Assembly (NCBI GenBank): GCA_010909165.1
Contig: VJWM01000144.1
Span: 1-64,000 of the forward strand
DNA from: Anthoceros angustus
Taxonomy: Eukaryota; Plantae; Anthocerotophyta
Length of the DNA: 64,000 nt
Reading direction: 5' to 3'
Shown here: positions 5,421 through 58,326 of the stretch, piece after piece
Numbering within the stretch: position 1 is the first letter of the stretch
How the letters are laid out: each line of letters begins with the position of its first letter
Notes under the pieces: generated by a model
The model's database searches: none
Seen by the model: only the letters and a program-made list of their open reading frames with translations
Told to the model about the DNA's origin: nothing
Translations under genes and position numbers: made by a program

Positions 5421-5512
5421 AGAAGATTATGATTCTACTCAGAAAGGATGCTGATGTTAAGAATTTGTTGTGCATAGGCTTGTGCTCAATGTTGCCTACA
5501 AGTTCGCAGAAC

Positions 5513-6505: not shown

Positions 6506-6897
6506 TGCCAAGTGTCATTGTGGTGAGACATCGAATCGAAGTGCAACAGGAAGGATTGTGGAGACACCGCCTATAGCTTTGGATATTGTAGGGATGGCGT
6601 TATAGAATGTTAATTATAACCCGTGAGCACTAGGCGAACCATGACCGCTAACAACACTGGGACTATCCAATCGAACATACGATGAAATCTTGCAAGGCAT
6701 ACGATCTCGGGCCAAGAACATGATCGCTCACAACACCATTTACGAGGTGGATCGTTGTGGAAGGCTTTTGGATCTCGAGGAAAGTGACATCTTGGGCAAG
6801 AAGCGATCGCCAACCAGCCTTTGTCTTTGAATTTTGAAACCCGACATGCTCACATGTCCTAGTGCCATAGGGTGACATGATGTGCATACGAATTAAG

Positions 6898-7044
6898 GTG
6901 AGGCACAAGGATGTGGTGAGTGAAACATCACGCCACGTTTTGACAAGTGAGGCACAAGGATGTGGTGAGTGAAACATCACGCCACGTTTTGACAAGTGAG
7001 GCACAAGGATGTGGTGAGTCAAACATCACGCCACGTTTTGACAA
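6898..7044 (+). repeat. Three tandem copies of a 49-bp segment of the array spacer
   Basis: gtgaggcacaaggatgtggtgagt(g/c)aaacatcacgccacgttttgacaa starts at 6898, 6947 and 6996. Confidence 0.9.
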
Positions 7045-7440
7045 GTGAGGCACAAGGATGTGGTGAAAGGGAATGCCTAAGGATCTAGCTCTTGTCGAGC
7101 TCGAGTTGAGAGCTGCTGAATCTTTAATGCTGCCCTTCAAACCGTGTGCATTTGTCGTTGTCTTTGAATTTTGTAGGGATGGCGTTATAGAATGTTAATT
7201 ATAACCCGTGAGCACTAGGCGAACCATGATCGCTCACAACACTCACTCTATCCGATCGAACATACGATGATTGCAAGGCACAAGGATGTGGTGAAAGGGA
7301 ATGCCTAAGGATCTAGCTCTTGTCGAGCTCGAGTTGAGAGCTGCTGAATCTTTAATGCTGCCCTTCAAACCGTGTGCATTTGTCGTGACGAGATCGCGAT
7401 CGGTCCCAAGCCATCCTTGTCGAGTAGGTTGCATATGCTT

Positions 7441-7856
7441 ACGATGCTAAGGATGGATGATTAGGATGCTAAGGACACATGCTTAGGATGCTAAGGACAC
7501 ATGCTTAGGATGCTAAGGATGGATGATTAGGATGCTAAGGATGGATGATTAGGATGCTAAGGATGGATGATTAGGATGCTAAGGACACATGCTTAGGATG
7601 CTAAGGACACATGCTTAGGATGCTAAGGGAAGATGCTTAGGATGCTAAGGATGGATGATTAGGATGCTAAGGGAAGATGCTTAGGATGCTAAGGATGGAT
7701 GATTAGGATGCTAAGGATGGATGATTAGGATGCTAAGGGAAGATGCTTAGGATGCTAAGGGAAGATGCTTAGGATGCTAAGGATGGATGATTAGGATGCT
7801 AAGGACACATGCTTAGGATGCTAAGGATGGATGATTAGGATGCTAAGGATGGTAAG
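7441..7856 (+). repeat. 22-bp minisatellite, largest expansion (~18 copies; usually 3-5 per array unit)
   Basis: Three interspersed variants: gctaaggatggatgattaggat, gctaaggacacatgcttaggat and gctaagggaagatgcttaggat. Confidence 0.95.
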
Positions 7857-8528
7857 GCGGTGGCTCCCTCCCACAAAGCCAACATTATCCGAACCAAATT
7901 GTAAAGTTTCAAACATGAAAGACAAATCAAAAAGTAGTTTGAGTTATTTGAGTAGGTTGCATATGCTTACGATGCTAAGGATGGATGATTAGGATGCTAA
8001 GGGCGAGAAGCGCGGTTTTATTAGCATGGCCACAAAAGGATGTCGTAACGTGGAATGCCCTTGGATCCGGTCTTGCAAAATGTGGTGAGTCAAACATCAC
8101 GCCACGTTTTGACAAGTGAGGCACAAGGATGTGGTGAAAGGGAATGCCTAAGGATCTAGCTCTTGTCGGAGTAGGTTGCATATGCTTACGACGCTAAGGG
8201 AAGATGCTTAGGATGCTAAGGATGGATGATTAGGATGCTAAGGATGGATGATTAGGATGCTAAGGACACATGCTTAGGATGCTAAGGGAAGATGCTTAGG
8301 ATGCTAAGGATGGTAAGGCGGTGGCTCCCTCCCACAAAGCCAACATTATCCGAACCAAATTGTAAAGTTTCAAACATGAAAGACAAATCAAAAGTAGTTT
8401 GAGTTATTTGAGTAGTCGAATACATTACATCCATATATATATGTGGGTATTGTGTTAGTGTAAAATCAAACCTTTGTCTTTGAATTTCGACCTCGTCGAC
8501 TTTGAATAAGAGTACTAGTGGATGTATG

Positions 8529-8535
<7 letters not shown>

Positions 8536-8567
<32 letters not shown>
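8536..8567. repeat. (TA)n microsatellite
   Basis: Run of TA dinucleotides joining two non-adjacent parts of the array unit. Confidence 0.85.
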
Positions 8568-8573
<6 letters not shown>

Positions 8574-9894
8574 CCAGCGTGATCAATGTTGTGTCACCGA
8601 ATTTTGTAGAGATGGCGTTATAGAATGTTAATTATAGTTTGAATTTTGAAACCCGACATGCTCACATGTCCTAGTGCCATAGGGTGACATGATGTGCATA
8701 CGAATTAAGGTGAGGCACAAGGATGTGGTGAAAGGGAATGCCTAAGGATCTAGCTCTTGTCGGAGTAGGTTGCATATGCTTACGATGCTAAGGATGGATG
8801 ATTAGGATGCTAAGGGAAGATGCTTAGGATGCTAAGGATGGATGATTAGGATGCTAAGGATGGATGATTAGGATGCTAAGGATGGATGATTAGGATGCTA
8901 AGGACACATGCTCACATGTCCTAGTGCCATAGGGTGACATGATGTGCATTTGTCGTTGTCTTTGAATTTTGAAACCCGACATGCTCACATGTCCTAGTGC
9001 CATAGGGTGACATGATGTGCATACGAATTAAGGTGAGGCACAAGGATGTGGTGAGTCAAACATCACGCCACGCTTTTGACAAGTGAGGCACAAGGATGTG
9101 GTGAAAGGGAATGCCTAAGGATCTAGCTCTTGTCGGAGTAGGTTGCATATGCTTACGACGCTAAGGGAAGATGCTTAGGATGCTAAGGATGGATGATTAG
9201 GATGCTAAGGACACATGCTTAGGATGCTAAGGGAAGATGCTTAGGATGCTAAGGATGGTAAGGCGGTGGCTCCCTCCCACAAAGCCAACATTATCCGAAC
9301 CAAATTGTAAAGTTTCAAACATGAAAGACAAATCAAAAAGTAGTTTGAGTTATTTGAGTAGTCGGAATACATTATATAATATTAAAAATAAATTAGAGTG
9401 ATTGAAGAAATTCTTTGTCACTTTAAATAATTTTCAATAATAAATCATGATTAATGATCCTTGATTATTTAATTATAGTTTGAATTTTGAAACCCGACAT
9501 GCTCACATGTCCTAGTGCCATAGGGTGACATGAGTATGCAAAAGAGTGTGTCATAAGGTGCAGCAACGCAAATAGTGTGTTACAGGTGTGGTAGGGAGTG
9601 GCAGCCCATAAATAAATGAACCTGAATTAATTAGTATGGCTGGTGGTTCAAGGATCCGGACCTAAAAATCTTATCACGACTTGAAAAACAACGACGGTCA
9701 CACATTATGTAACATATTGGTGTGGGGAAGCGTTACATGAGTGTGATGAGGGATCCGGTGAGGCGAGGGCGGGAGGACTCGGAGGTGGTGCGTTACGCAA
9801 GGGCATCATTTTACAAGATGGTCCAAAAGTGTTAGAATACTATGTTACAACATCCCCCGCCTTCCTTCCACGGAGGTATTGCGATTTGTTTTGG

Positions 9895-10160
9895 CGCGAT
9901 CGATCCCAAGCCATCCTTGTCGAGCTCGAGTTGAGAGCTGCTGAATCTTTAATGCTGCCCTTCAAACCGTGTGCATTTGTCGTGACGAGATCGCGATCGA
10001 TCCCAAGCCATCCTTGTCGAGCTCGAGTTGAGAGCTGCTGAATCTTTAATGCTGCCCTTCAAACCGTGTGCATTTGTCGTGACGAGATCGCGATCGATCC
10101 CAAGCCATCCTTGTCGAGCTCGAGTTGAGAGCTGCTGAATCTTTAATGCTGCCCTTCAAA
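9895..10160 (+). repeat. 97-bp perfect tandem repeat (~2.7 copies) of array spacer sequence
   Basis: cgatcccaagccatcc starts at 9901, 9998 and 10095. The loop closes at the shared word atttgtcgt. Confidence 0.9.
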
Positions 10161-11625
10161 CCGTGTGCATTTGTCGTTGTCTTTGAATTTTGTAGGGATG
10201 GCGTTATAGAATGTTAATTATAGTTTGAATTTTGTAGAGATGGCGTTATAGAATGTTAATTATAACCCGTGAGCACTAGACGAACCATGATCGCTCAATC
10301 TCAACAAGTCCTCCTTTGTTTTGGTAATTTTAATCTCACCTATATATGTAGGGTTTCGTATCGTCAATATCATTGAACCGTTGAGTTCCAAGTTGCAGCA
10401 AAATCTACAATTTGTCGTTGTCTTTGAATTTTGTAGGGATGGCGTTATAGAATGTTAATTATAGTTTGAATTTTGTAGAGATGGCGTTATAGAATGTTAA
10501 TTATAGTTTGAATTTTGTAGGGATGGCGTTATAGAATGTTAATTATAACCCGTGAGCACTAGACGAACCATGATCGCTCAATCTCAACAAGTCCTCCTTT
10601 GTTTCGTCAATATCATTGAACTGTTGAGTTCCAAGTTGCAGCAAAATCTACAATTTGTCGTTGTCTTTGAATTTTGTAGGGATGGCGTTATAGAATGTTA
10701 ATTATAACCCGTGAGCACTAGACGAACCATGATCGCTCAATCTCAACAAGTCCTCCTTTGTTTCGTCAATATCATTGAACCGTTGAGTTCCAAGTTGCAG
10801 CAAAATCTACAATTTGTCGTTGTCTTTGAATTTTGTAGGGATGGCGTTATAGAATGTTAATTATAACCCGTGAGCACTAGACGAACCATGATCGCTCAAT
10901 CTCAACAAGTCCTCCTTTGTTTCGTCAATATCATTGAACCGTTGAGTTCCAAGTTGCAGCAAAATCTACAATTTGTCGTTCAATCTCAACAAGTCCTCCT
11001 TTGTTTCGTCAATATCATTGAACTGTTGAGTTCCAAGTTGCAGCAAAATCTACAATTTGTCGTGACGAGATCGCGATCGATCCCAAGCCATCCTTGTCGA
11101 GTAGGTTGCATATGCTTACGATGCTAAGGACACATGCTTAGGATGCTAAGGATGGATGATTAGGATGCTAAGGGAAGATGCTTAGGATGCTAAGGACACA
11201 TGCTTAGGATGCTAAGGGCGGGAGGACTCGGAGGTGGTGCGTTACGCAAGGGCATCATTTTCATTACAAGATGGTCCAAAAGTGTTAGAATACTATGTTA
11301 CAACATCCCCCGCCTTCCTAAAATTGCAATCTCCGATAAGTCGTGCTTTGTTTTGGTAATTTTAATCTCACCTATATATGTAGGGTATTGTGTTAGTGTA
11401 AAATCAAACCTTTGTGCCCAACCCTGGAAACTTCATGAGTTGTTGTACATAGGACTTTTCAGATCGCTCAATCTCAACAAGTCCTCCTTTGTTTCGTCAA
11501 TTTTAGTCTCGGGCTATATATGTAGGGTTTCGTATCGTCAATATCATTGAACCGTTGAGTTCCAAGTTGCAGCAAAATCTACAATTTGTTGTGCACTTGC
11601 TTGGGAACTTAGTGCGAGCGAGATT

Positions 11626-11730
11626 ATGGCGCATCGTGATGCTACGGTGTGCGTTGTGGAAGGCTTTGGACCCAAGTCGCAGCGATGGGGGCCCCGATAT
11701 GGACGCAACATTGTGGGAGAACCTCCACGA
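11626..11730 (+). pseudogene. F-box gene 5' fragment
   Basis: ATG gcgcatc through LWENLHD, then switches at acgacgc into the minisatellite. Confidence 0.75.
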
Positions 11731-12744
11731 CGCTAAGGGAAGATGCTTAGGATGCTAAGGATGGATGATTAGGATGCTAAGGACACATGCTTAGGATGCT
11801 AAGGATGGATGATTAGGATGCTAAGGATGGTAAGGCGGTGGCTCCCTCCCACAAAGCCAACATTATCCGAACCAAATTGTAAAGTTTCAAACATGAAAGA
11901 CAAATCAAAAGTAGTTTGAGTTATTTGAGTAGTCGGAATACATTATATAATATTAAAAATAAATTAGAGTGATTGAAGAAATTCTTTGTCACTTTAAATA
12001 ATTTTCAATAATAAATCATGATTAATGATCCTTGATTATTTAATTATAGTTTGAATTTTGAAACCCGACATGCTCACATGTCCTAGTGCCATAGGGTGAC
12101 ATGAGTATGCAAAAGAGTGTGTCATAAGGTGCAGAACGCCGCAAATAGTGTGTTACAGGTGTGGTAGGGAGTGGCAGCCCATAAATAAATGAACTGAATT
12201 AATTAGTATGGCTGGTGGTTCAAGGATCCCGGACCTAAAAATCTTATCACGACTTGAAAAACAACGACGGTCACACATTATGTAACATATTGGTGTGGGA
12301 AGCGTTACATGAGTGTGATGAGGGATCCGGTGAGGCGAGGGCGGGAGGACTCGGAGGTGGTGCGTTACGCAAGGGCATCATTTTCATTACAAGATGGTCC
12401 AAAAGTGTTAGAATACTATGTTACAACATCCCCCGCCTTCCTAAAATTGCAATCTCCGATAAGTCGTGCTTTGTTTTGGTAATTTTAATCTCACCTATAT
12501 ATGTAGGGTATTGTGTTAGTGTAAAATCAAACCTTTGTGCCCAACCCTGGAAACTTCATGAGTTGTTGTACATAGGACTTTTCAGATCGCTCAATCTCAA
12601 CAAGTCCTCCTTTGTTTTCAATTTTAGTCTCGCTATATATGTAGGGTTTCGTATCGTCAATATCATTGAACCGTTGAGTTCCAAGTTGCAGCAAAATCTA
12701 CAATTTGTTGTGCACTTGCTTGGGAACTTGGTGCGAGCGAGATT

Positions 12745-14231
12745 ATGGCGCATCGGTGATGCTACGGCTCATTGCTTTGGACCCAAGTCGCAGCGATGGG
12801 GGCCCCGATATGGACGCAACATTGTGGGAGAACCTCACGACGCGTTGTGGGCGTGTTGTCCTCTCGCCATTGGCAAGCGCGTTTCGCTTGGAGGATGCGT
12901 GCAGACGGTGGTACACGTATATGAGGTCGCCTCTTTTCTTGGAGGAGCATTCGCAAAATTTGATGATCGGGATGTGGAGCCAGTCCCGCTACGGTGTGCG
13001 TTGTGGGCGTGTTGTCCTCTCGCCATTGGCAAGCGCGTTTCGCTTGAGCATGCGTGCACGGTGGTACACGTACATGAGGTCGCCTCTTTTCTTGGAGGAG
13101 CATTCGCAAAATTTGATGATCGGGATGTGGAGCCAGTCCCGCTACGGTGTGCGTTGTGGAGCGCGCCCGTTGAAGAGAGGCCTAGGAGCTCAAGGGCCGT
13201 CGGAGATGGATTTGTCCTTCCTTCCACGGAGGTATTGCGATTTGTTTTGGCGCGATCCGAGCTTGAGGCGGAGTGCCTTGTGGGGTCCCGACACCACGTT
13301 CGCAGCCACGTGACGGCTACATTGTTGTCGCCGAGACAGTCCGCGGATGGGGAGGATCCCATGGTACCACCGACTCTTGCATTTTCAATCCAGTGACCAA
13401 GACGCATGTGGAGCCGCCGATCCGAGCTTGAGGCGGACGGCGGGTTGGCAGCCCGACCGGGTGTGCAAGTAGTAGCCGCGGACGGCGGGTTCAAGGTGTT
13501 TGTACTTCACCACGTTAGTGGCGGTGAAGTTCGAGCCTCCATGTACCGGCCGAGCGATACCATCCGGTGGTCAAACCGCTGGACATTGAGGGGTGAAAGT
13601 GGTGGGTGACATGATGTGCATACGAATTAAGGTGAGGCACCTCCGGTGGGGAGCCGCCGACCAAATCCTATGCAATCGACAACACCATTTACGAGGTGGA
13701 TCGTTGTGGAAGGCTCTCGGCTTATTACCTAGATGTCGCGCTGAAGGCGCAGTTCATCCATGCAAATGTGCTCATCAATGATGACACTCGAGGAGTCCGG
13801 TGTCATTCAAGTGGTTTAATAGTCGCTCGCGTAAGGGCCGTGCACGGTTGTGTGAGCACCGTGGAACTCTCTACCTCGTTCACACCATTAACGGGGCTTG
13901 AGATCCGGAAGCGGACAGAGCCTGGATCGGTCACGCGTTTGTGTCTCGAAGGCCGAGCGATACCATCCAGTGGTCAAACCGCTGGACATTGAGGGGTGAA
14001 AGTGGTGGGTGACATGATGTGCATACGAATTAAGGTGAGGCACCTCCGGTGGACGAAGCCCGGCAAGCCAAACCTAGTGATGAGTCGGGATTTGTTGGGG
14101 TACCACGAGAAGAAGAGTGGCTTTGCTTTCACGTTGTGGAAGGCTTTTGGATCTCGAGGAAAGTGACATCTTGGGCAAGAAGCGATCGCCAACCAGCCTT
14201 TGTCTTTGAATTTCGACCTCGTCGACTTTGA
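12745..14231 (+). pseudogene. F-box protein gene copy, frameshifted, with internal duplication and rearrangement
   Basis: Fragments MLRLIALDPSRSDGGPDMDATLWENL, RRWYTYMRSPLFL and C-terminal PAFVFEFRPRRL*. Segment ~12840-13010 is repeated at ~13000-13150. Confidence 0.8.
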
Positions 14232-16370
14232 ATAAGAGTACTAGTGGATGTATGTACATACATATATGCGATGTTCAAGTGTTGTGAACTTCTCTCCAAC
14301 ATCCATTAGGTTGTCTTAGTCCAATTCCTCTATGAAATTCTTGGTTTAATATCAAATTGTGCCAAAGTCCACAACAAAAGCTCTTAATAATATGTCCAAC
14401 CTACGGACTACAGCACTATAGGTTGTAATACATTATACATATATAAAATACCAGCGTGATCAATGTTGTGTCACCGAATTTTGTAGGGATGGCGTTATAG
14501 AATGTTAATTATAACCCGTGAGCACTAGACGAACCATGATCGCTCACAACACTCACTCTATCCGATCGAACATACGATGAAATCTTGCAAGGCACACGAT
14601 CTCACAGTGCAGCTGTAATACATTACATCCATATATATATAAACTACCAACGTGGTGGTGGTTCGAATTTTGTAGAGATGGCGTTATAGAATGTTAATTA
14701 TAACCCGTGAGCACTAGACGAACCATGACCGCTAACAACACTCGGGACTATCCAATCGAACATACGATGATTGCAAGGCATACGATCTCATTGGGCCAAG
14801 AACATGATATCGCTTTGATGCCAAGCAAACTTCAATTCTTGCTAGGTCATGCGACTGGCGGGCATATGTTTGATTACCTTCGATTTGCCGAGCGGCCGAT
14901 CCGATCAACCGGAGCTGGATGCGCTCGTGCACCCCATCCACTAAGCCGGAGCTCCACCTCGGTGAAGGACCAAAAGAAAAAGTGAACAATTTGTCGTGAC
15001 GAGATCGCGATCGGTCCCAAGCCATCCTTGTCGAGCTACCGAGTTGAGAGCTGCTGAATCTTTAATGCTGCCCTTCAAACCGTGTGCATTTGTCGTTGTC
15101 TTTGGAATGCGGCAGCCTATTAACTTTTGTTGCCAATGGTGTGGGACATGTGTGCAAGATCCGGCGAGTTGAAAGAAGCGCGTTTTATTAGCATGGCCAC
15201 AAAAGGATGTCGTAACGTGGAATGCCCTTGGATCTGGTCTTGCAAAATGTGGTGAGTCAAACATCACGCCACGTTTTGACAAGTCGAGGCACAAGGATGT
15301 GGTGAAAGGGAATGCCTAAGGATCTAGCTCTTGTCGGAGTAGGTTGCATATGCTTACGACGCTAAGGGAAGATGCTTAGGATGCTAAGGATGGATGATTA
15401 GGATGCTAAGGACACATGCTTAGGATGCTAAGGGAAGATGCTTAGGATGCTAAGGGCGGTGGCTCCCTCCCACAAAGCCAACATTATCCGAACCAAATTG
15501 TAAAGTTTCAAACATGAAAGACAAATCAAAAAGTAGTTTGAGTTATTTGAGTAGTCGGAATACATTATATAATATTAAAAATAAATTAGAGTGATTGAAG
15601 AAATTCTTTGTCACTTTAAATAATTTTCAATAATAAATCATGATTAATGATCCTTGATTATTTAATTATAGTTTGAATTTTGAAACCCGACATGCTCACA
15701 TGTCCTAGTGCCATAGGGTGACATGAGTATGCAAAAGAGTGTGTCATAAGGTGCAGCAACGCAAATAGTGTGTTACAGGTGTGGTAGGGAGTGGCAGCCC
15801 ATAAATAAATGAACTGAATTAATTAGTATGGCTGGTGGTTCAAGGATCCGGACCTAAAAATCTTATCACGACTTGAAAAAACAACGAGCGGTCACACATT
15901 ATGTAACATATTGGTGTGGGAAGCGTTACATGAGTGTGATGAGGGATCCGTGAGGCGAGGGCGGGAGGACTCGGGAGGTGGTGCGTTACGCAAGGGCATC
16001 ATTTTCTGTTACAAGATGGTCCAAAAGTGTTAGAATACTATGTTACAACATCCCCCGCCTTCCTAAAATTGCAATCTCCGATAAGTCGTGCTTTGTTTCG
16101 TCAATTTTAGTCTCGGGCTATATATGTGGGTATTGTGTTAGTGTAAAATCAAACCTTTGTGCCCAACCTGGAAACTTCAATGAGTTGTTGTACATAGGAC
16201 TTTTCAGATCGTTCAATCTCAACAAGTCCTCCTTTGTTTCGTCAATTTTAGTCTCGGGCTATATATGTAGGGTTTCGTATCGTCAATATCATTGAACTGT
16301 TGAGTTCCAAGTTGCAGCAAAATCTACAATTTGTTGTGCACTTGCTTGGGAACTTGGTGCGAGCGAGATT

Positions 16371-17682
16371 ATGGCGCATCGGTGATGCTACGGCTCATTT
16401 TGGACCCAAGTCGCGATGGGGCCCCGATATGGACGCAACATTGTGGGAGAACCTCCACGACGCCAGGGCGAAGTGTTGTCCTCTCGCCGTTGGCAAGCGC
16501 GTTTCGCCGAGCATGCGTGCACGGTGGTACACGTACATGAGGTCGCCTCTTTTCTTGGAGGAGCATTCGCAAAATTTGATGATCGGGATGTGGAGCCAGT
16601 CCCGCTACGGTGTGCGTTGTGGAGCGCGCCCGTTGAAGAGAGGCCTAGGAGCTCAAGGGCCGTCGGAGATGGATTTGTCCTTCCTTCCACGGAGGTATTG
16701 CGATTTGTTTTGGCTGCGATCCGAGCTTGAGGCGGAGTGCCTTGTGGGGTCCCGACACCACGTTCGCAGCAGCCACGGTGACGGCTACATTGTTGTCGCC
16801 GAGACAGTCCGCGGATGGGAGGATCCCATGGTACCACTGGACTCTTGCATTTTCAATCCAGTGACCAAGACGTCTGAGCCGGCCGGGTTGGCAGCCCGAC
16901 CGAGCCGGCCGGGTTGGCAGCCCGACCGACCGGGTGTGCAAGTAGTAGCCGCGCGGACGGCGGTTCAAGGTGTTTGTACTTCACCACGTTAGTGGCGGTG
17001 AAGTTCGAGCCTCCATGTACCGGTCGGCCGAGCGGATGGAGCAGGACGCGACTTCAACTCGTCGCGTGTGGACTTTGAGCTTACGGGCAGCCGGCGGGTT
17101 CAAGGATCCGGACCAAATCCTATGCAATCGACAACACCATTTACGAGGTGGATCGTTGTGGAAGGCTCTCGGCTTATTATTTAGATGTCGCGCTGAAGGC
17201 GCGCAGTTCGTCCATGCAAATGTGCTCATCAATGATGACACTCGAGGGAGTCCGGTGTCATTCAAGTGGTTTAATAGTCGCCGCGTAAGGGCCGTGCACG
17301 GTTGTGTGAGCACCGTGGAACTCTACCTCGTTCACACCATTAACGGGGCTTGAGATCCGGAAGGGACAGAGCCCGGATCGGTCGACGTTTGTGTCTCAAG
17401 GCTGCCGAGCGATACCATCCGGTGGTCAAACCGCTGGACATTGAGGGGGTGAAAGTGGTGGGTGACATGATGTGCATACGAATTAAGGTGAGGCACCTCC
17501 GGTGGGACGAAGCCCGGCAAGCCAAACCTAGTGATGAGTCGGGATTTGTTGGGGTACCACGAGAAGAAGAGTGGCTTTGCTTTCACGTTGTGGAAGGCTT
17601 TTGGATCTCGAGGAAAGTGACATCTTGGGCAAGAAGCGATCGCCAACCAGCCTTTGTCTTTGAATTTCGACCTCGACTTTGA
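16371..17682 (+). pseudogene. F-box protein gene copy, full span, multiple frameshifts
   Basis: DMDATLWENL...RWYTYMRSPLFL...SCIFNPVTKT...EEEWLCFHVVEGFW...PAFVFEFRPRL*, distributed over several frames. Confidence 0.85.
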
Positions 17683-26837: not shown

Positions 26838-26868
<31 letters not shown>

Positions 26869-29399
26869 TACCAACGTGGTGGTGGTTCGACGAATTTTGT
26901 AGAGATGGCGTTATAGAATGTTAACCCCTGAGCACTGGACGAACCATGACCGCTAACAACACTCGGGACTATCCAATCGAACATACGATGATTGCAAGGC
27001 ATACGATCTCTGGGCCAAGAACATGATATCGCTTTGATGCCAAGCAAACTTCAATTCTTGCTAGGTCATCGATGCGACTGGCGGGCATATGTTTGATTAC
27101 CTTCGATTTGCCGAGCGCCGATCCCGATCAACCGGAGCTGGATGCGCTCGTGCACCCCATCCACTAAGCCGGAGCTCCACCTCGGTGAAGGACCAAAAGA
27201 AAAAGTGAACAATTTGTCGTGACGAGATCGCGATCGGTCCCAAGCCATCCTTGTCGAGCTCGAGTTGAGAGCTGCTGAATCTTTAATGCTGCCCTTCAAA
27301 CCGTGTGCATTTGTCGTTGTCTTTGGAATGCGGCAGCCTATTAACTTTTGTTGCCAATGGTGTGGGACATGTGTGCAAGATCCGCGAGTTGAAAGAAGCG
27401 CGGTTTTATTAGCATGGCCACAAAAGGATGTCGTAACGTGGAATGCCCTTGGATCCGGTCTTGCAAAATGTGGTGAGTCAAACATCACGCCACGCTTTTG
27501 ACAAGGTGAGGCACAAGGATGTGGTGAAAGGGAATGCCTAAGGATCTAGCTCTTGTCGAGTAGGTTGCATATGCTTACGACGCTAAGGGAAGATGCTTAG
27601 GATGCTAAGGATGGATGATTAGGATGCTAAGGACACATGCTTAGGATGCTAAGGGAAGATGCTTAGGATGCTAAGGCGGTGGCTCCCTCCCACAAAGCCA
27701 ACATTATCCGAACCAAATTGTAAAGTTTCAAACATGAAAGACAAATCAAAAAGTAGTTTGAGTTATTTGAGTAGTCGGAATACATTATATAATATTAAAA
27801 ATAAATTAGAGTGATTGAAGAAATTCTTTGTCACTTTAAATAATTTTCAATAATAAATCATGATTAATGATCCTTGATTATTTAATTATAGTTTGAATTT
27901 TGAAACCCGACATGCTCACATGTCCTAGTGCCATAGGGTGACATGAGTATGCAAAAGAGTGTGTCATAAGGTGCAGCAACGCAAATAGTGTGTTACGGTG
28001 TGGTAGGGAGTGGCAGCCCATAAATAAATGAACCTGAATTAATTAGTATGGCTGGTGGTTCAAGGATCCCGGACCTAAAAATTCTTATCACGACTTCGAA
28101 AAAATAACGAACGGTCACACATTATGTAACATATTGGTGTGGGGAAGCGTTACATGAGTGTGATGAGGGGATCCGGTCTGGAGGCGAGGGCGGGAGGACT
28201 CGGAGGTGGTGCTTACGCTAAGGGAAGATGCTTAGGATGCTAAGGATGGATGATTAGGATGCTAAGGACACATGCTTAGGATGCTAAGGCGAGATAGCGA
28301 GGATGGTAAGGCGGTGGCTCCCTCCCACAAAGCCAACATTATCCGAACCAAATTGTAAAGTTTCAAACATGAAAGACAAATCAAAAAGTAGTTTGAGTTA
28401 TTTGAGTAGTCGGAATACATTATATAATATTAAAAATAAATTAGAGTGATTGAAGAAATTCTTTGTCACTTTAAATAATTTTCAATAATAAATCATGATT
28501 AATGATCCTTGATTATTTAATTATAGTTTGAATTTTGAAACCCGACATGCTCACATGTCCTAGTGCCATAGGGTGACATGAGTATGCAAAAGAGTGTGTC
28601 ATAAGGTGCAGCAACGCAAATAGTGTGTTACAGGTGTGGTAGGGAGTGGCAGCCCATAAATAAATGAACCTGAATTAATTAGTATGGCTGGTGGTTCAAG
28701 GATCCCGGACCTAAAAATCTTATCACGACTTGAAAAAACAACGAACGGTCACACATTATGTAACATATTGGTGTGGGAAGCGTTACATGAGTGTGATGAG
28801 GGATCCGGTCTTGCAAAATGTGGTGAAAGGGAATGCCTAAGGATCTAGCTCTTGTCGGAGTAGGTTGCATATGCTTACGCAAGGGCATCATTTTCTACAA
28901 GATGGTCCAAAAGTGTTAGAATACTATGTTACAACATCCCCCGCCTTCCTAAAATTGCAATCTCCGATAAGTCGTGCTTTGTTTTGGTAATTTTAATCTC
29001 ACCTATATATGTGGGTATTGTGTTAGTGTAAAATCAAACCTTTGTGCCCAACCCTGGAAACTTCATGAGTTGTTGTACATAGGACTTTTCAGATCGCTCA
29101 ATCTCAACAAGTCCTCCTTTGTTTCGTCAATTTTAGTCTCGGGCTATATATGTAGGGTTTCGACGTCCAATATCATTGAACTGTTGAGTTCCAAGTTGCA
29201 GCAAAATCTACAATTTGTTGCACATAGGACTTTTCAGATCGTTCAATCTCAACAAGTCCTCCTTTGTTTCGTCAATTTTAGTCTCGGGCTATATATGTAG
29301 GGTTTCGACGTCCAATATCATTGAACTGTTGAGTTCCAAGTTGCAGCAAAATCTACAATTTGTTGTGCACTTGCTTGGGAACTTGGTGCGAGCGAGATT

Positions 29400-30400
29400 A
29401 TGGCGCATCGGTGATGCTACGGCTCATTGCTTTGGACCCAAGTCGCAGCGATGGGGCCCCGATATGGACGCAACATTGTGGGAGAACCTCCACGACGCGT
29501 TGTGGGCGTGTTGTCCTCTCGCCGTTGGCAAGCGTTTCGCTTGAGCATGCGTGCACGGTGGTACACGTACATGAGGTCGCCTCTTTTCTTGGAGGAGCAT
29601 TCGCAAAATTTGATGATCGGGATGTGGAGCCAGTCCCGCTACGGTGTGCGTTGTGGGCGCGCCCGTTGAAGAGAGGCCTAGGAGCTCAAGGGCCGTCGGA
29701 GATGGATTTGTCCTTCCTTCCACGGAGGTATTGCGATTTGTTTTGGCGCTGCGATCGAGCTTGAGGCGGAGTGCCTTGTGGGGTCCCGACACCACGTTCG
29801 CAGCCACGGTGGCTACATTGTTGTCGCCGAGACAGTCCGCGGATGGGGAGGATCCCATGGTACCACCGACTCTTGCATTTTCAATCCATGACCAAGACGA
29901 TGTGGAGCCAGTCCCGCTACGGTGTGGTAGGGAGTGGCAGCCGGCGGGTTGGCAGCCCGACCGGGTGTGCAAGTAGTAGCCGCGCGGACGGCGGTTCAAG
30001 GTGTTTGTACTTCACCACGTTAGTGGCGGTGAAGTTCGAGCCTCCATGTACCGGTCGGCCGAGCGATACCATCCGGTGGACGCGACTTCAACTCGTCGCG
30101 TGTGGACTTTGAGCTTACGGGCAGCCGGCGGGTTCAAGGATCCGGACCAAATCCTATGCACCGACAACACCATTTACGAGGTGGATCGTTGTGGAAGGCT
30201 CTCGGCTTATTACCTAGATGTCGCGCTGAAGGCGCGCAGTTCGTCCATGCAAATGTGCTCATCAATGATGACACTCGAGGAGTCCGGTGTCATTCAAGTG
30301 GTTTAATAGTCGCTCGCGTAAGGGCCGTGCGGTTGTGTGAGCACCGTGGAACTCTCTACCTCGTTCACACCATTAACGGGCTTGAGATCCGGAAGCGGGA
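29400..30400 (+). pseudogene. F-box gene copy, truncated 3'
   Basis: From the ATG at 29400 to gatccggaagcgg, then switches to upstream sequence ggaggactcgg. Confidence 0.8.
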
Positions 30401-30832
30401 GGACTCGGAGGTGGTGCGTTACGCAAGGGCATCATTTTCTGTTACAAGATGGTCCAAAAGTGTTAGAATACTATGTTACAACATCCCCCGCCTTCCTAAA
30501 ATTGCAATCTCCGATAAGTCGTGCTTTGTTTTGGTAATTTTAATCTCACCTATATATGTGGGTATTGTGTTAGTGTAAAATCAAACCTTTGTGCCCAACC
30601 CTGGAAACTTCATGAGTTGTTGTACATAGGACTTTTCAGATCGCTCAATCTCAACAAGTCCTCCTTTGTTTCGTCAATCTCAACAAGTCCTCCTTTGTTT
30701 CGTCAATTTTAGTCTCGTGCTATATATGTAGGGTTTCGTATCGTCCAATATCATTGAACCGTTGAGTTCCAAGTTGCAGCAAAATCTACAATTTGTTGTG
30801 CACTTGCTTGGGAACTTGGTGCGAGCGAGATT

Positions 30833-32960
30833 ATGGCGCATCGTGATGCTACGGCTCATTGCTTTGGACCCAAGTCGCAGCGATGGGGCCCCGATATGGA
30901 CGCAACATTGTGGGAGAACCTCCACGACGCGTTGTGGGCGGTGTTGTCCTCTCGCCGTTGGCAAGCGTTTCGCTTGAGCATGCGTGCACGGTGGTACACG
31001 TACATGAGGTCGCCTCTTTTCTTGGAGGAGCATTCGCAAAATTTGATGATCGGGATGTGGAGCCAGTCCCGCTACGGTGTGCGTTGTGGAGCGCGCCCGT
31101 TGAAGAGAGGCCTAGGAGCTCAAGGGCCGGAGATGGATTTGTCCTTCCTTCCACGGAGGTATTGCGATTTGTTTTGGCGCTGCGATCGAGCTTGAGGCGG
31201 AGTGCCTTGTGGGGTCCCGACACCACGTTCGCAGCAGCCACAGGTGACGGCTACATTGTTGTCGCTGAGACAGGTCCGCGGGATGGGGAGGATCCCATGG
31301 TACCACCGGACTCTTGCATTTTCAATCCATGACCAAGACGTCTGAGCCGGCCGGGTTGGCAGCCGGCGGGTTGGCAGCCCGACCGGGTGTGCAAGTAGTA
31401 GCCGCGCGGACGGCGGTTCAAGGTGTTTGTACTTCACCACGTTAGTGGCGGTGAAGTTCGAGCCTCCATGTACCGGTCGGCCGAGCGATACCATCCGGTG
31501 GACGCGACTTCAACTCGTCGCGTGTGGACTTTGAGCTTACGGGCAGCCGGCGGGTTCAAGGATCCGGACCAAATCCTATGCGACAACACCATTTACGAGG
31601 TGGATCGTTGTGGAAGGCTCTCGGCTTATTACCTAGATGTCGCTGAAGGCGCGCAGTTCGTCCATGCAAATGTGCTCATCAATGATGACACTCGAGGAGT
31701 CCGGTGTCATTCAAGTGGTTTAATAGTCGCTCGCGTAAGGGCCGTGCGGTTGTGTGAGCACCGTGGAACTCTCTACCTCGTTCACACCATTAACGGGCTT
31801 GAGATCCGGAAGCGGACAGAGCCTGGATCGATCCCAAGCCATCCTTGTCGAGTAGGTTGCATATGCTTACGACGCTAAGGGAAGATGCTTAGGATGCTAA
31901 GGCGGACGCGACTTCAACTCGTCGCGTGTGGACTTTGAGCTTACGGGCAGCCGGCGGGTTCAAGGATCCGGACCAAATCCTATGCGACAACACCATTTAC
32001 GAGGTGGATCGTTGTGGAAGGCTCTCGGCTTATTACCTAGATGTCGCTGAAGGCGCGCAGTTCGTCCATGCAAATGTGCTCATCAATGATGACACTCGAG
32101 GAGTCCGGTGTCATTCAAGTGGTTTAATAGTCGCTCGCGTAAGGGCCGTGCGGTTGTGTGAGCACCGTGGAACTCTCTACCTCGTTCACACCATTAACGG
32201 GGCTTGAGATCCGGAAGCGGACAGAGCCTGGATCGGTCTTGCAAAATGTGGTGAGTCAAACATCACGCTCGTTTTGACAAGCCGAGCGATACCATCCGGT
32301 GGACGCGACTTCAACTCGTCGCGTGTGGACTTTGAGCTTACGGGCAGCCGGCGGGTTCAAGGATCCGGACCAAATCCTATGCGACAACACCATTTACGAG
32401 GTGGATCGTTGTGGAAGGCTCTCGGCTTATTACCTAGATGTCGCTGAAGGCGCGCAGTTCGTCCATGCAAAATGTGCTCATCAATGATGACACTCGAGGA
32501 GTCCGGTGTCATTCAAGTGGTTTAATAGTCGCTCGCGTAAGGGCCGTGCGGTTGTGTGAGCACCGTGGAACTCTCTACCTCGTTCACACCATTAACGGGG
32601 CTTGAGATCCGGAAGCGGACAGAGCCTGGATCGATCCCAAGCCATCCTTGTCGAGTAGGTTGCATATGCTTACGATGCTAAGGCGAGCGATACCATCCGG
32701 TGGTCAAACCGCTGGACATTGAGGGGTGAAAGTGGTGGGTGACATGATGTGCATACGAATTAAGGTGAGGCACCTCCGGTGGACGAAGCCCGCAAGCCAA
32801 ACCTAGTGATGAGTCGGGATTTGTTGGGGTACCACGAGAAGAAGAGTGGCTTTGCTTTCACGTTGTGGAAGGCTTTTGGATCTCGAGGAAAGTGACATCT
32901 TGGGCAAGAAGCGATCGCCAACCAGCCTTTGTCTTTGAATTTCGACCTCGTCGACTTTGA
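30833..32960 (+). pseudogene. F-box gene copy with triplicated central ~330-bp segment
   Basis: The segment encoding DATSTRRVWTLSLRAAGGFKDPDQILCDNTIYEVDRCGRLSAYYLDV occurs at ~31500, ~31905 and ~32299. Stop at 32960. Confidence 0.8.
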
Positions 32961-35109
32961 ATAAGAGTACTAGTGGATGTATGTACATACATATATGCGA
33001 TGTTCAAGTGTTGTGAACTTCTCTCCAACATCCATTAGGTTGTCTTAGTCCAATTCCTCTATGAAATTCTTGGTTTAATATCAAATTGTGCCAAAGTCCA
33101 CAACAAAAGCTCTTAATAATATGTCCAACCTACGGACTACAGCACTATAGGTTGTAATACATTATACATATATAAAATACCAGCGTGATCAATGTTGTGT
33201 CACCGAATTTTGTAGGGATGGCGTTATAGAATGTTAATTATAACCCGTGAGCACTAGGCGAACCATGATCGCTCACAACACTCACTCTATCCGATCGAAC
33301 ATACGATGAAATCTTGCAAGGCACACGATCTCACAGTGCAGTGTAATACATTACATCCATATATATATATGTAAACTACCAACGTGGTGGTGGTTCGAAT
33401 TTTGTAGAGATGGCGTTATAGAATGTTAATTATAACCCGTGAGCACTAGGCGAACCATGACCGCTAACAACACTCACTCTATCCGATCGAACATACGATG
33501 ATTGCAAGGCATACGATCTCGTGGGCCAAGAACATGATATCGCTTTGATGCCAAGCAAACTTCAATTCTTGCTAGGTCATCGATGCGACTGGCGGGCATA
33601 TGTTTGATTACCTTCGATTTGCCGAGCGGCCGATCACGATCAACCGGAGCTGGATGCGCTCGTGCACCCCATCCACTAAGCCGGAGCTCCACCTCGGTGA
33701 AGGACCAAAAGAAAAAGTGAACAATTTGTCGTGACGAGATCGCGATCGGTCCCAAGCCATCCTTGTCGAGCTCGAGTTGAGAGCTGCTGAATCTTTAATG
33801 CTGCCCTTCAAACCGTGTGCATTTGTCGTTGTCTTTGGAATGCGGCAGCCTATTAACTTTTGTTGCCAATGGTGTGGGACATGTGTGCAAGATCCGCGAG
33901 TTGAAAGAAGCGCGGTTTTATTAGCATGGCCACAAAAGGATGTCGTAACGTGGAATGCCCTTGGATCCGGTCTTGCAAAATGTGGTGAGTCAAACATCAC
34001 GCCACGTTTTGACAAGCCGAGGCACAAGGATGTGGTGAAAGGGAATGCCTAAGGATCTAGCTCTTGTCGAGTAGGTTGCATATGCTTACGACGCTAAGGG
34101 AAGATGCTTAGGATGCTAAGGATGGATGATTAGGATGCTAAGGACACATGCTTAGGATGCTAAGGCGAGATAGCGAGGATGGTAAGGCGGTGGCTCCCTC
34201 CCACAAAGCCAACATTATCCGAACCAAATTGTAAAGTTTCAAACATGAAAGACAAATCAAAAAGTAGTTTGAGTTATTTGAGTAGTCGGAATACATTATA
34301 TAATATTAAAAATAAATTAGAGTGATTGAAGAAATTCTTTGTCACTTTAAATAATTTTCAATAATAAATCATGATTAATGATCCTTGATTATTTAATTAT
34401 AGTTTGAATTTTGAAACCCGACATGCTCACATGTCCTAGTGCCATAGGGTGACATGAGTATGCAAAAGAGTGTGTCATAAGGTGCAGCAACGCAAATAGT
34501 GTGTTACAGGTGTGGTAGGGAGTGGCAGCCCATAAATAAATGAACTGAATTAATTAGTATGGCTGGTGGTTCAAGGATCCGGACCTAAAAATCTTATCAC
34601 GACTTGAAAAACAACGACGGTCACACATTATGTAACATATTGGTGTGGGGAAGCGTTACATGAGTGTGATGAGGGGATCCGGTCTGGAGGCGTAGGGCGG
34701 GGAGGACTCCGGAGGTGGTGCGTTACGCAAGGGCATCATTTTCTGTTACAAGATGGTCCAAAAGTGTTAGAATACTATGTTACAACATCCCCCCGCCTTC
34801 CTAAAATTGCAATCTCCGATAAGTCGTGCTTTGTTTCGGTAATTTTAATCTCAGCCTATATATGTGGGGTATTGTGTTAGTGTAAAATCAAACCTTTGTG
34901 CCCAACCCGCTGGAAACTTCAGCTGAGTTGTTATACATAGGACTTTTCGTATCGTTCAATCTCAACAAGTCCTCCTTTGTTTCGTCAATTTCAGTCTCAG
35001 GCTATATATGTAGGGTTTCGACGTCAATATCATTGAACCGTTGAGTTCCAAGTTGCAAAATCTACAATTTGTTGTGCACTTGCTTGGGAACTTGGTGCAG
35101 AGCGAGATT

Positions 35110-36541
35110 ATGGCGCATCGGTGATGCTACGGCTCATTGCTTTGGACCCAAGTCGCAGCGATGGGGGCCCCGATATGGACGCAACATTGTGGGAGAACCT
35201 CCACGACGCCAGGGCGGTGTTGTCCTCTCGCCGTTGGCAAGCGCGTTTCGCCGAGCATGCGTGCAGACGGTGGTACACGTACATGAGGTCGCCTCTTTTC
35301 TTGGAGGAGCATTCTGCAAAATTTGATGATCAGGATGTGGAGCCAGGTCCTGCTACGGTGTGCGTTGTGGAGCGCGCCCCGTTGAAGAGAGGCCTAGGAG
35401 CTCAAGGGCCGTCGGAGATGGATTTGTCCTTCCTTCCACGGAGGTATTGCGATTTGTTTTGGCGCTGCGATCTGAGCTTGAGGCGGAGTGCCTTGTGGGG
35501 TCCCGACACCACGTTCGCAGCAGCCACGGTGACGGCTACATTGTTGTCGCCGAGACAGTCCGCGGATGGGAGGATCCCATGGTACCACCGGACTCTTGCA
35601 TTTTCAATCCAGTGACCAAGACGCATGAGGTCGCCTCTTTTCTTGGAGGAGCATTCGCAAAATTTGATGATCGGGATGTGGAGCCAGTCCCGCTACGGTG
35701 TGCGTTGTGGAGCCAGTCCCGCTACGGTGTGCGTTGTGGAGCCGGCGGGTTCAAGGTGTTTGTACTTCACCACGTTAGTGGCGGTGAAGTTCGAGCCTCC
35801 ATGTACCGGCCGAGCGGATGGAGCGGACGCGACTTCAACTCGTCGCGTGTGGACTTTGAGCTTACGGCAGCCGGCAGGAGCCACTAGACCAAATCCTATG
35901 CATTGACAACACCATTTACAAGGTGGATTGTTGTGGAAGGCTTTCGGCTTATTACCTGGATGTCGCGCCTGAAGGCGCGTAGGTCGTCCATGCGAATGTG
36001 CTCATCAATGATGACACTTGAGGGAGTCCGGTGTCTTTCAAGTGGTTTAATAGTCGCTCGCATAAGGACCGTGCATGGTTGTGTGAGCATCGTGGAACTC
36101 TACCTCGTTCACACCATTAACGGGCTTGAGATCCGGCGAGTTGAAAGAAGCGGTTTTATTAGCATGGCCACAAAAGGATGTCGAACGTGGAATGCCCTTG
36201 GATCCGGTCTTGCAAATGTGGTGAGTCAAACATCACGCCACGTTTTGACAAGCCGAGCGATACCATCCGGTGGTCAAACCTGGACATTGAGGGGTGAAAG
36301 TGGTGGGTGACATGATGTGCATACGAATTAAGGTGAGGCACCTCCGGTGGGACATGTGCAAGATCGCGATCGATCCCAAGCCAAACCTAGTGATGAGTCG
36401 GGATTTGTTGGGGTACCACGAGAAGAAGAGTGGCTTTGCTTTCACGTTGTGGAAGGCTTTTGGATCTCGAGGAAAGTGACATCTTGGGCAAGAAGCGATC
36501 GCCAACCAGCCTTTGTCTTTGAATTTCGACCTCGACTTTGA
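35110..36541 (+). pseudogene. F-box protein gene copy, frameshifted, with a more diverged central part (~35880-36120)
   Basis: N-terminal ORF 35121-35615 and terminal ...FEFRPRL* at 36541. The central part has many substitutions relative to other copies (e.g. ggattgttgtggaaggctttcgg). Confidence 0.8.
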
Positions 36542-38385
36542 ATAAGAGTACTAGTGGATGTATGTACATACATATATGCGATGTTCAAGTGTTGTGAACT
36601 TCTCTCCAACATCCATTAGGTTGTCTTAGTCCAATTCCTCTATGAAATTCTTGGTTTAATATCAAATTGTGCCAAAGTCCACAACAAAAGCTCTTAATAA
36701 TATGTCCAACCTACGGACTACAGCACTATAGGTTGTAATACATTATACATATATAAAATACCAGCGTGATCAATGTTGTGTCACCGAATTTTGTAGGGAT
36801 GGCGTTATAGAATGTTAATTATAACCCGTGAGCACTAGACGAACCATGATCGCTCACAACACTCACTCTATCCGATCGAACATACGATGAAATCTTGCAA
36901 GGCACACGATCTCACAGTGCTGTAATACATTACATCCATATATATATAAACTACCAACGTGGTGGTGGTTCGAATTTTGTAGAGATGGCGTTATAGAATG
37001 TTAATTATAACCCGTGAGCACTAGACGAACCATGACCGCTAACAACACTCAAGACTATCCAATCGAACATACGATGATTGCAAGGCATACGATCTCATTG
37101 GGCCAAGAACATGATATCGTTTGATGCCAAGCAAACTTCAATTCTTGCTAGGTCATCGATGCGACTGGCGGGCATATGTTTGATTACCTTCGATTTGCCG
37201 AGCGCCGATCCGATCAACCGGAGCTGGATGCAGCTCGTGCACCCCATCCACTAAGCCGGAGCTCCACCTCGGTGAAGGACCAAAAGAAAAAGTGAACAAT
37301 TTGTCGTGACGAGATCGCGATCGGTCCCAAGCCATCCTTGTCGAGCTACCGAGTTGAGAGCTGCTGAATCTTTAATGCTGCCCTTCAAACCGTGTGCATT
37401 TGTCGTTGTCTTTGGAATGCGGCAGCCTATTAACTTTTGTTGCCAATGGTGTGGGACATGTGTGCAAGATCCGCGAGTTGAAAGAAGCGCGGTTTTATTA
37501 GCATGGCCACAAAAGGATGTCGTAACGTGGAATGCCCTTGGATCCGGTCTTGCAAAATGTGGTGAGTCAAACATCACGCCACGTTTTGACAAGTGAGGCA
37601 CAAGGATGTGGTGAAAGGGAATGCCTAAGGATCTAGCTCTTGTCGGAGTAGGTTGCATATGCTTACGACGCTAAGGGAAGATGCTTAGGATGCTAAGGAT
37701 GGATGATTAGGATGCTAAGGACACATGCTTAGGATGCTAAGGGAAGATGCTTAGGATGCTAAGGGCGGTGGCTCCCTCCCACAAAGCCAACATTATCCGA
37801 ACCAAATTGTAAAGTTTCAAACATGAAAGACAAATCAAAAAGTAGTTTGAGTTATTTGAGTAGTCGAATACATTATATAATATTAAAAATAAATTAGAGT
37901 GATTGAAGAAATTCTTTGTCACTTTAAATAATTTTCAATAATAAATCATGATTAATGATCCTTGATTATTTAATTATAGTTTGAATTTTGAAACCCGACA
38001 TGCTCACATGTCCTAGTGCCATAGGGTGACATGAGTATGCAAAAGAGTGTGTCATAAGGTGCAGCAACGCCGCAAATAGTGTGTTACAGGGTGTGGTAGG
38101 GAGTGGCAGCCCATAAATAAATGAACCTGAATTAATTAGTATGGCTGGTGGTTCAAGGATCCCGGACCTAAAAATTCTTATCACGACTTCGAAAAAACAA
38201 CGAACGGTTACACATTATGTAACATATTGGTGTGGGGAAGCGTTACATGAGTGTGATGTGCTAGGCGTATGCTTATCTAGAATCTTTTTTCCCATATATT
38301 GGGTACATACCCCTTGGAAAAGAAGAGCCTGGAATGTGTAGGAATTTCGGAAGGTTGCGCGAAACTTGAAAGGGCAGCAGCAGGT

Positions 38386-38543
38386 TCCGGTGGTCAAACC
38401 GCTGGACATTGAGGGGTGAAAGTGGTGGGTGACATGATGTGCATACGAATTAAGGTGAGGCACAAGGATGTGGTGAAAGGGAATGCCTAAGGATCTAGCT
38501 CTTGTCGAGTAGGTTGCATATGCTTACGATGCTAAGGCGGTGG
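38386..38543 (+). repeat. Mosaic array-derived segment embedded in unique sequence upstream of MBF1c
   Basis: Unique sequence resumes at 38259. 38386-38543 is F-box 3' CDS joined at gtgaggcac to spacer and minisatellite, flanked by the direct repeat cggtgg (38388-38393, 38538-38543). Confidence 0.85.
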
Positions 38544-58246: not shown

Positions 58247-58326
58247 GATCTTGCTGCACGGGAATCGGTTGTGGGTTGCAAGCGTGGCACTGAGGAGTTG
58301 GATGGGGATCTGGGAATGGCTGCACA

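Follow-up and report, generated by a model that had tools for sequence, protein, structure and literature searches.

Short-word junctions in a tandem F-box repeat array of Anthoceros angustus: a probable artefact of assembly

Does a tandem repeat array whose parts are re-joined in irregular order at short shared words record a genuine shuffling of DNA, or was the disorder introduced while the sequence was being assembled? The question is raised by a locus on contig VJWM01000144.1 of Anthoceros angustus (assembly GCA_010909165.1), of which we analyzed positions 1 to 64,000 of the forward strand, hereafter the window. A sequence-only reading of this DNA had described an F-box array that walks through its own unit, switching at microhomologies of 5-14 nt, and had weighed a locus-confined generator of chimeric F-box alleles against an error of assembly.

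The array occupies positions 6583-38537 of the window (+) and amounts to about 9 equivalents of a 3,452-bp unit, all in a single orientation and with irregular joins. As the reference, or canonical, unit we took the 3,452-bp copy at 13659-17110 (+), each of whose adjacencies is backed by at least three collinear copies (13659-19409, 23158-28224, 32301-35623 and others). Mapping to this unit accounts for 31,185 of the 31,955 array bases (97.6%), each unit position being covered 6-17 times and every piece lying on the + strand, and it bears out the description of the array as a walk through its own unit with junctions at short words that the joined parts have in common. A 22-bp minisatellite (ATGCTTAGGATGCTAAGG plus 4 nt), which in a normal unit comprises about 5 repeats (unit 1690-1800), is expanded at 7435-7852 (+), and an isolated piece that corresponds to unit 1691-2244 (minisatellite included; 93-95% identity) lies at 1-539 (+), 6 kb to the left of the array. 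On the right, the array is adjoined by an intact, intronless MBF1-type gene of 144 aa (38662-39096, +) whose closest relative found is 87% identical. The flanking genes MBF1, MOT1 and 6PGD are all intact, as the earlier remark about clean flanks would have it; exact sequence look-ups of these three genes returned no record. The structure beneath the disorder is most likely a series of tandem units of about 3.45 kb, each with an F-box/beta-propeller gene, a 22-bp minisatellite and internal duplications, set between clean single-copy genes.

The name F-box array finds modest support. An open reading frame of 254 aa at 19914-20678 (+) carries the Pfam F-box domain PF00646 at residues 40-80 (29.5 bits, threshold 20.5; E=6e-7), being the sole open reading frame above the Pfam F-box threshold, whereas ten further open reading frames from other copies gave no match in a Pfam search. 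The frame runs on into a beta-propeller-like region before it is cut by frameshifts; its Atlas features resemble those of streptophyte F-box and beta-propeller clusters (0.92-0.95), and no Pfam propeller domain was detected in the tested open reading frames of the unit copies. A word-based protein search with the F-box open reading frame yielded no relative at E<=1e-5, and scanning metagenomes for a 33-mer taken from the unit gave no match. As assembled, the frame of the F-box gene is broken in every copy, and the frameshifts may be sequencing noise. Scattered small indels between copies, to which attention had already been drawn, are indeed abundant: in 58.5 kb of comparison, gap openings (1,199) outnumber mismatches (781), and the differences are mainly indels of 1-4 nt. 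Plant F-box genes are typically amplified in tandem, and a head-to-tail array with a lineage-specific F-box/beta-propeller gene is probably real.

The disorder is finest at the array's left-hand end (6583-11214, +), which an exact-match parse divides into 180 pieces with an overlap histogram that peaks at 9 nt; a greedy BLAST parse had mislabelled some multi-hop chains as joins of 1-6 nt, and these the exact-match parse resolved. All five junction words that had been reported for 6730-6906 (ACAACAC, CGTTGTGGAAGGCT, TTTGAATTT, GGGTGACATGA and GTGAGGCAC) were found there, and several reported recurrences were found as well: GGGTGACATGA followed by GTGAGGCAC at about 8682/8710 and at 9005/9033, GGATCCGGT at 19403 and 28801, and a junction at GCGTTGTGG at 12998. 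A further recurrence of the first pair, claimed near 38430, stands only in its second half, inasmuch as GTGAGGCAC at 38455 is a junction, but 38386-38463 is collinear with unit 308-385 and hence includes GGGTGACATGA, at about 38427, in its normal setting. This junction belongs to the terminal two unit pieces of the array (38386-38537, +), in which unit 308-385 is joined to unit 1628-1709 at AAGGTGAGGCAC (38452-38463); lying between a unique stretch of 127 bp and the MBF1 gene, these pieces make the junction at 38455 the best anchored one. The unique stretch (38259-38385) is the sole insertion-like sequence noted, and among the joins parsed no untemplated filler was otherwise seen.

The exact or near-exact loops that had been noticed, of 49, 97, 159 and 29 bp, are likewise present. 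The 49-bp loop (3.4 copies; 6898-7066, +) closes on ATGTGGTGA, leading from unit 1639 back to 1589, and the exact 97-bp loop (2.9 copies; 9895-10177, +) on ATTTGTCGT, from unit 1430 back to 1331, while every turn of the 159-bp loop (3 copies; 10507-10980, +) is a chain of overlaps of 8-9 nt (GATCGCTCA, TCGTCAAT, ACAATTTGT and others); all three close on 9-mers. The exactness of the loops, at first sight cleaner than the noise, was dropped as evidence because many intervals of the unit are the same in every copy. Replication slippage, too, would switch within one strand and form loops at direct repeats, an observation that speaks against an artefact.

Chains of 2-8 pieces, each contributing at most 10 nt, are found in the fine mosaic, the clearest being a chain of five hops at 10407-10433 (+) that passes through unit positions 2668, 1328, 1430, 542, 2014 and 818 with overlaps of 9, 9, 9, 9 and 8 nt, its intermediate pieces contributing just 3, 8, 5 and 2 new nucleotides. 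The whole chain recurs at 10650-10676, and the part from unit 1430 onward also at 10170-10192. Were it to be read as two plain joins with overlaps of about 6 and 1 nt, all spanning 10-mers would need to be present by chance elsewhere in the unit. Another sub-path, from unit 2014-2075 to 349-385 and then to 1625 onward, recurs after being reached from differing predecessors, its edges again being shared words.

The lengths of the overlaps follow a strikingly simple rule. For 6583-11214 we counted the runs of k-mers that are missing from the collinear copies: k=9 gives 25, k=10 gives 38 and k=11 gives 74, and for k>=12 the number stays near 82. The vocabulary of the fine mosaic is closed at k=10 (2.5% of its 10-mers are missing, in 38 mostly-noise runs) and open at k=11, whereas a control collinear copy shows no step between these two values. 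Breaks with an overlap of exactly 9 nt number 36 in the same region, and the neighbouring classes of 8 and 10 nt hold 13 and 8, respectively; the 36:8 ratio of the 9-nt to the 10-nt class fits a hard floor at 9 nt followed by a geometric tail of 1/4, and a floor at 8 nt is rejected, in a test in which the class of at least 11 nt was entered as an approximated rather than counted 3. When joins are expressed per ordered pair of non-homologous shared words, the fraction used climbs from 0.3% (6-mers) through 1.6% (7-mers) and 2.9% (8-mers) to 17.8% (9-mers) and is about 15% at 10 nt and above; the rise from 8 to 9 nt is sharp (p=1.4e-5), and 9-mers do not differ significantly from longer words (p=0.69). 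Random joining would produce overlaps of at least 9 nt at a rate of about 4e-5, and yet these are the commonest class observed. Some 20 distinct joins with overlaps below 9 nt, including 0-5 nt, are not accounted for by the 9-nt floor. As regards orientation, the claim that switches stay on the forward strand holds fully: among shared words of at least 9 nt, 30 of the 182 direct ones are used and 0 of the 130 inverted (p=4e-8).

The core of the array (11-38 kb) shows the 9-nt peak less strongly: k=10 brings 7 new breaks, k=11 brings 12 and k=12 brings 8, on a background of about 105 noise events, and the overlaps of the joins span a broad range of 0-22 nt. The irregularities here include units from which about 380 bp, bounded by the 22-nt direct repeats GCCGAGCGATACCATCCGGTGG, are missing, a 153-bp duplication (12842-13159) and truncated units, and this is the noisiest region, with about 12 events per kb.

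From these letters we judge it likely that the mosaic is an artefact of a small-word (de Bruijn-type) graph, or of a consensus step, in a noisy assembly and does not reflect biology. The leaning of the sequence-only reading toward such an origin gains support from the closure of the vocabulary at k=10, the step and plateau of the fixed 9-nt rule, the restriction of the switches to one strand and the tiny hops of 2-8 nt, beside which stands the indel-type noise. Software as the cause is something we infer, and what we name is a class of cause, not a program. A long-read consensus or correction step might have threaded its path through a small-word graph built from oriented reads stacked on a near-identical repeat; any word of at least 9 nt present at two places of the unit would then become a branch point at which the path may exit wrongly, loop or take a shortcut, and the output would hold only 10-mers seen in the reads, in a false long-range order. 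The consenser of wtdbg, for one, operates on a de Bruijn graph.

The chief rival is that the mosaic is genuine, microhomology-mediated template switching or slippage (MMBIR/FoSTeS-like or Pol-theta-like) within the array having produced chimeric F-box copies. Joins at shared words do lie far above chance, all switches are on the same strand, as would be expected of slippage on one template, a single word can serve deletions as well as duplications (ATGTGGTGA is used in both directions), some joins have overlaps of 0-8 nt, and the junction at 38455 lies less than 100 bp from unique sequence on either side. However, use per word rises abruptly at exactly 9 nt and is flat beyond, where annealing should give a smooth dependence on length; MMBIR and TMEJ junctions are mostly of 0-6 nt with a decaying distribution and often carry small insertions, and untemplated insertions are absent here. 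Five consecutive hops of 2-8 new nucleotides are hard to square with a polymerase. FoSTeS/MMBIR events and Pol-theta fillers often include inversions and mix orientations, and yet no inverted segment was seen despite 130 inverted opportunities. Moreover, the F-box gene is intact in no copy, such that no functional alleles would have been made. We regard this account as unlikely, and the proposal of a locus-confined MMBIR/Pol-theta-like diversifier of F-box alleles is left unsupported, since it agrees neither with the distribution of overlaps nor with the orientation or the sizes of the pieces. A stricter version would take the junctions as the work of same-strand template switching in the plant that needs about 9 nt of annealing, uses nearly every word of at least 9 nt and scrambles tandem repeats, the F-box array included; we hold this to be quite unlikely. 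Were it true, it would be an unprecedented, sharply thresholded process of DNA shuffling, and we know of no described counterpart to same-strand repeat shuffling with an annealing requirement of about 9 nt.

An intermediate account, in our judgment decidedly unlikely as a whole, would keep the fine 9-nt mosaic as an artefact and treat a substantial part of the kb-scale irregularity in the core as true structural variation among units. It would accommodate the broad 0-22-nt overlaps and the weak 9-nt peak of the core, together with the recurrence of the 22-nt repeat join in several copies (13549, 30057 and 31479), as inherited variants would show; against it, the core is also the region of highest noise (about 12 events per kb), and a walk through a graph likewise yields recurrence. 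Differences among units on the kb scale, for example at long direct repeats, may nonetheless be genuine in part.

It is very improbable that chimeras formed in vitro, by whole-genome amplification or library PCR, were then faithfully assembled: template switching in vitro likewise uses short shared words, but multiple-displacement chimeras are mostly inverted and the array uses 0 of 130 inverted words, a consensus should outvote random events in single molecules, an enzyme would not be expected to impose a sharp 9-nt floor, and the multi-hop chains recur identically.

Two mobile-element candidates were also considered. The word GTGAGGCAC might have been a target-site duplication of 9 bp around a Mutator-like element inserted as unit 386-1627, which was rejected when terminal inverted repeats were not found, and capture of gene fragments by a Helitron or Pack-MULE was rejected given that the unit itself supplies every piece and the joins obey the fixed-word rule.

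If the mosaic is indeed an artefact of the assembly, the biological content of the locus reduces to an ordinary tandem array of F-box genes, and its value lies in a warning: the order of the repeats, their copy number and their reading frames in the assembly are not to be trusted. The analysis also offers tests that require no reads and can part software walks from real rearrangements, namely closure of the vocabulary at k=10 versus k=11, use per shared word and use of inverted words.

It remains to set the locus beside systems that are already known. The plant F-box/beta-propeller families that occur in tandem arrays (FBA, KIB1-4 and AT5G49610-like) resemble the array gene in that the F-box lies near the N-terminus of its open reading frame and in that its features are akin to those of streptophyte F-box and beta-propeller clusters; unlike them, it has no protein relative at E<=1e-5 and no Pfam propeller, and all its copies are interrupted. 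MMBIR/FoSTeS and Pol-theta end joining share with the array junctions at common words, serial switches and a nearby template, but they differ in overlap (mostly 0-6 nt, against a mode of exactly 9 nt with a step and a plateau), and the array uses 0 of 130 inversion opportunities and makes some hops of only 2-8 nt.

The remaining comparison is with small-k graph correctors (Daccord, CONSENT) and consensers (wtdbg-cns). CONSENT builds local de Bruijn graphs with k=9 and puts a path through the graph in place of the sequence (PMC7804095); in wtdbg-cns the k-mer size can be chosen, the usual or default setting being k=15 (PMC6701489). One published hornwort genome was assembled with wtdbg-1.2.8 after correction with NextDenovo (PMC7027989). 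Other hornwort genomes were assembled with miniasm/racon or MaSuRCA. The floor of the array, a 9-nt overlap with closed 10-mers, differs from the 8 nt that a node-centric graph with k=9 gives and from the 14 nt of wtdbg-cns at -k 15, and tools that work in local windows normally should not view a whole 3.45-kb unit in one graph, unlike the pattern seen here. The likeness extends, nevertheless, to output limited to words present in the reads with switches at words common to two places, to overlaps with a fixed lower bound and a geometric tail and loops at repeated words, to a single strand, as the reads are oriented beforehand, and to a disturbance that is worst in near-identical tandem repeats and spares their unique flanks.

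The array at 6583-38537 is made almost wholly of one unit, as revealed by self-comparison and by mapping to a 3,452-bp reference copy (13659-17110, along which unit positions are numbered): 31,185 of its 31,955 bases map to this unit, all on the + strand, amounting to about 9 unit-equivalents in which each unit position is covered 6-17 times. Five + strand stretches (13659-19409, 19695-21815, 23158-28224, 32301-35623 and 36252-38258) follow the order of the unit and are collinear among themselves, so each adjacency of the "canonical" unit is attested at least three times. Irregularly joined kb-scale pieces, also on the + strand, occupy 11215-13658, 19410-19694, 21816-23157, 28225-32300, 35624-36251 and 38259-38537, and the left edge of the array (6583-11214, + strand) is a 4.6-kb fine mosaic in which a piece contributes anywhere from roughly 2 to 120 nt. 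Within the unit lie an internal tandem duplication of about 189 bp (unit ~800-1270), a 22-bp minisatellite (unit 1690-1800) and an F-box-like coding region running from unit ~2700 through the unit end to ~300. A solo copy of unit 1691-2244, minisatellite included, is found at 1-539, 93-95% identical and 6 kb left of the array, and is either a dispersed element or a second array starting left of the window. Both the tandem array and its F-box-type gene are probably genuine and unremarkable.

The joins, that is, the points where non-adjacent parts of the unit meet at a short shared word, obey a sharp rule of overlap length in the fine mosaic. Runs of k-mers in 6583-11214 missing from the five collinear stretches rise in number from 25 (k=9) to 38 (k=10) and 74 (k=11), then level off at about 82 for k of 12 or more. 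Thus 36 break sites first become visible at k=11, corresponding to an overlap of exactly 9 nt, next to 13 with 8 nt and 8 with 10 nt; in a collinear control copy compared with the other four, every event is visible by k=8 and no further step follows. The 36:8 ratio matches the prediction of a hard floor at 9 nt with chance extension of 1/4, and a floor at 8 nt was rejected by a test of overlap counts in which the class of at least 11 nt was approximated. Use per opportunity was measured by taking all maximal words common to two non-homologous unit positions and seeking in the array the recombinant sequence, in which the word is preceded by 12 nt from one position and followed by 12 nt from the other. 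The share of words used is 0.3% for 6-mers, 1.6% for 7-mers and 2.9% for 8-mers versus 17.8% (16/90) for 9-mers (8 versus 9 nt, p=1.4e-5) and about 15% for longer words, with no difference in use between 9-mers and longer words (p=0.69). About 20 distinct joins have an overlap below 9 nt, and several joins scored in that range are 9-12-nt joins viewed through a noisy donor copy. The non-collinear core (9 kb) shows a weak 9-nt peak, with 7 breaks first seen at k=10, 12 at k=11 and 8 at k=12 on a background of about 105 noise events.

Joining is also restricted by strand, 30 of the 182 direct shared words of at least 9 nt being used as joins versus none of the 130 inverted ones in the unit (p=4e-8). 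An exact-match parse yields 180 pieces whose overlaps spike at 9 nt (38 cases, versus 13 at 8 and 9 at 10). The chain at 10407-10433 visits unit 2668, 1328, 1430, 542, 2014 and 818 in turn, with overlaps of 9, 9, 9, 9 and 8 nt and intermediate pieces contributing 3, 8, 5 and 2 new nt; it is repeated at 10650-10676, and its final three hops appear again at 10170-10192. Accounting for it by two plain joins (overlaps of about 6 nt and 1 nt) would require all spanning 10-mers to occur elsewhere in the unit by chance. The junction words and recurrences listed in the sequence-only reading are all present, apart from the recurrence near 38427, of which GTGAGGCAC at 38455 is indeed a junction while GGGTGACATGA at ~38427 sits in normal unit context. 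As for GTGAGGCAC as a transposon target-site duplication, a search for terminal inverted repeats found none.

Since 10-mers are closed and 11-mers open, word use is flat above the 9-nt threshold, and the joins are strand-specific and accompanied by tiny hops and cycles, we favor a word-graph path as their origin: threading a path through a graph of words taken from oriented reads would yield them. Judged from sequence, the shuffling is thus most probably an assembly or consensus artefact, named as a class rather than a program. The earlier preference for an artefact gains support from k-mer closure, the 9-nt threshold, strand and piece size; the exactness of the small loops, which it had also invoked, proved uninformative on origin. 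Some kb-scale unit differences may be true variants; one candidate is a join on the 22-nt direct repeat GCCGAGCGATACCATCCGGTGG that is present at each of 13549, 30057 and 31479. It is very improbable that the joins come from a genuine process with a threshold at 9 nt. MMBIR/FoSTeS or Pol-theta joining leaves short microhomologies that become rarer with length, pieces in both orientations and small insertions, and does not fit a mosaic with 10-mer closure, flat use above a 9-nt threshold, strand specificity, hops of a few nt and cycles.

Paralogous alignments of at least 1 kb between array copies (58.5 kb) contain 781 mismatches, whereas gaps open 1,199 times and fill 2,051 columns. Most gaps are 1-4 nt long, and homopolymers hold about half of those of 1 nt; this indel-heavy profile is that of an unpolished long-read consensus rather than of normal divergence. 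Directly left of the array, a tandem duplication of about 500 bp (5512-6503, 83% identical) is, in contrast to the array copies, older and substitution-rich. The ORF at 19914-20678 (254 aa) matches the Pfam F-box (29.5 bits versus a threshold of 20.5) and falls by protein-language features among streptophyte F-box plus beta-propeller clusters; the ORFs tested from other unit copies gave no F-box match in Pfam, and a word-based protein search with the F-box ORF returned no relative at E<=1e-5. Each unit therefore contains a lineage-specific F-box-type gene, all copies of which appear broken.

The host of the window is a land plant. An intact, intronless MBF1-type gene (38662-39096) adjoins the array on the right, followed on the minus strand by a MOT1 molybdate transporter (39981-41252), 6-phosphogluconate dehydrogenase (6PGD; 43677-45221) and a subtilase with I9 inhibitor, S8, PA and fn3_6 domains (47073-49554). 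Among named relatives of MBF1, bryophyte proteins rank highest (69-72% identity). The closest entry in the protein collection reaches no more than 87% identity, so the species and its close kin are absent from that collection. MBF1, MOT1 and 6PGD, which lie in unique flanking sequence, have uninterrupted reading frames. The subtilase is split into overlapping minus-strand ORFs (47073-47882 and 47809-49554), which suggests one interruption of the frame near 47809-47882, perhaps due to sequencing noise or an intron. Farther right, AT-rich tandem repeats of 42, 56 and 81 bp (52402-53305) adjoin 60-nt direct repeats (53309-53368 and 54205-54264, 100% identical, spaced 896 bp) that may mark the termini of a small mobile element. 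A GC-rich segment at 55060-55245 looks like a set of small loops with units of 29-37 bp and contains a stutter of 8 nt (CATGGGCG CATGGGCGCC); it may be a natural minisatellite or graph looping as in the array. At 58300-59170, in unique surroundings, stands a tandem repeat of 3.5 copies of 221 bp, 97-98% identical.

Long-read correctors and polishers employ small-k local de Bruijn graphs, and wtdbg-cns is de Bruijn-graph-based. The documented defaults of CONSENT and wtdbg-cns do not give exactly the 9-nt floor of the array joins, and the window is not tied to any of these programs, so we name the cause as a class. One published hornwort genome went through read correction and then wtdbg-1.2.8, with polishing by short reads only (PMC7027989), and wtdbg-cns has a k-mer-size option (PMC6701489). 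CONSENT, for which k=9 is stated, rewrites weak regions with sequence read along a path in the graph (PMC7804095).
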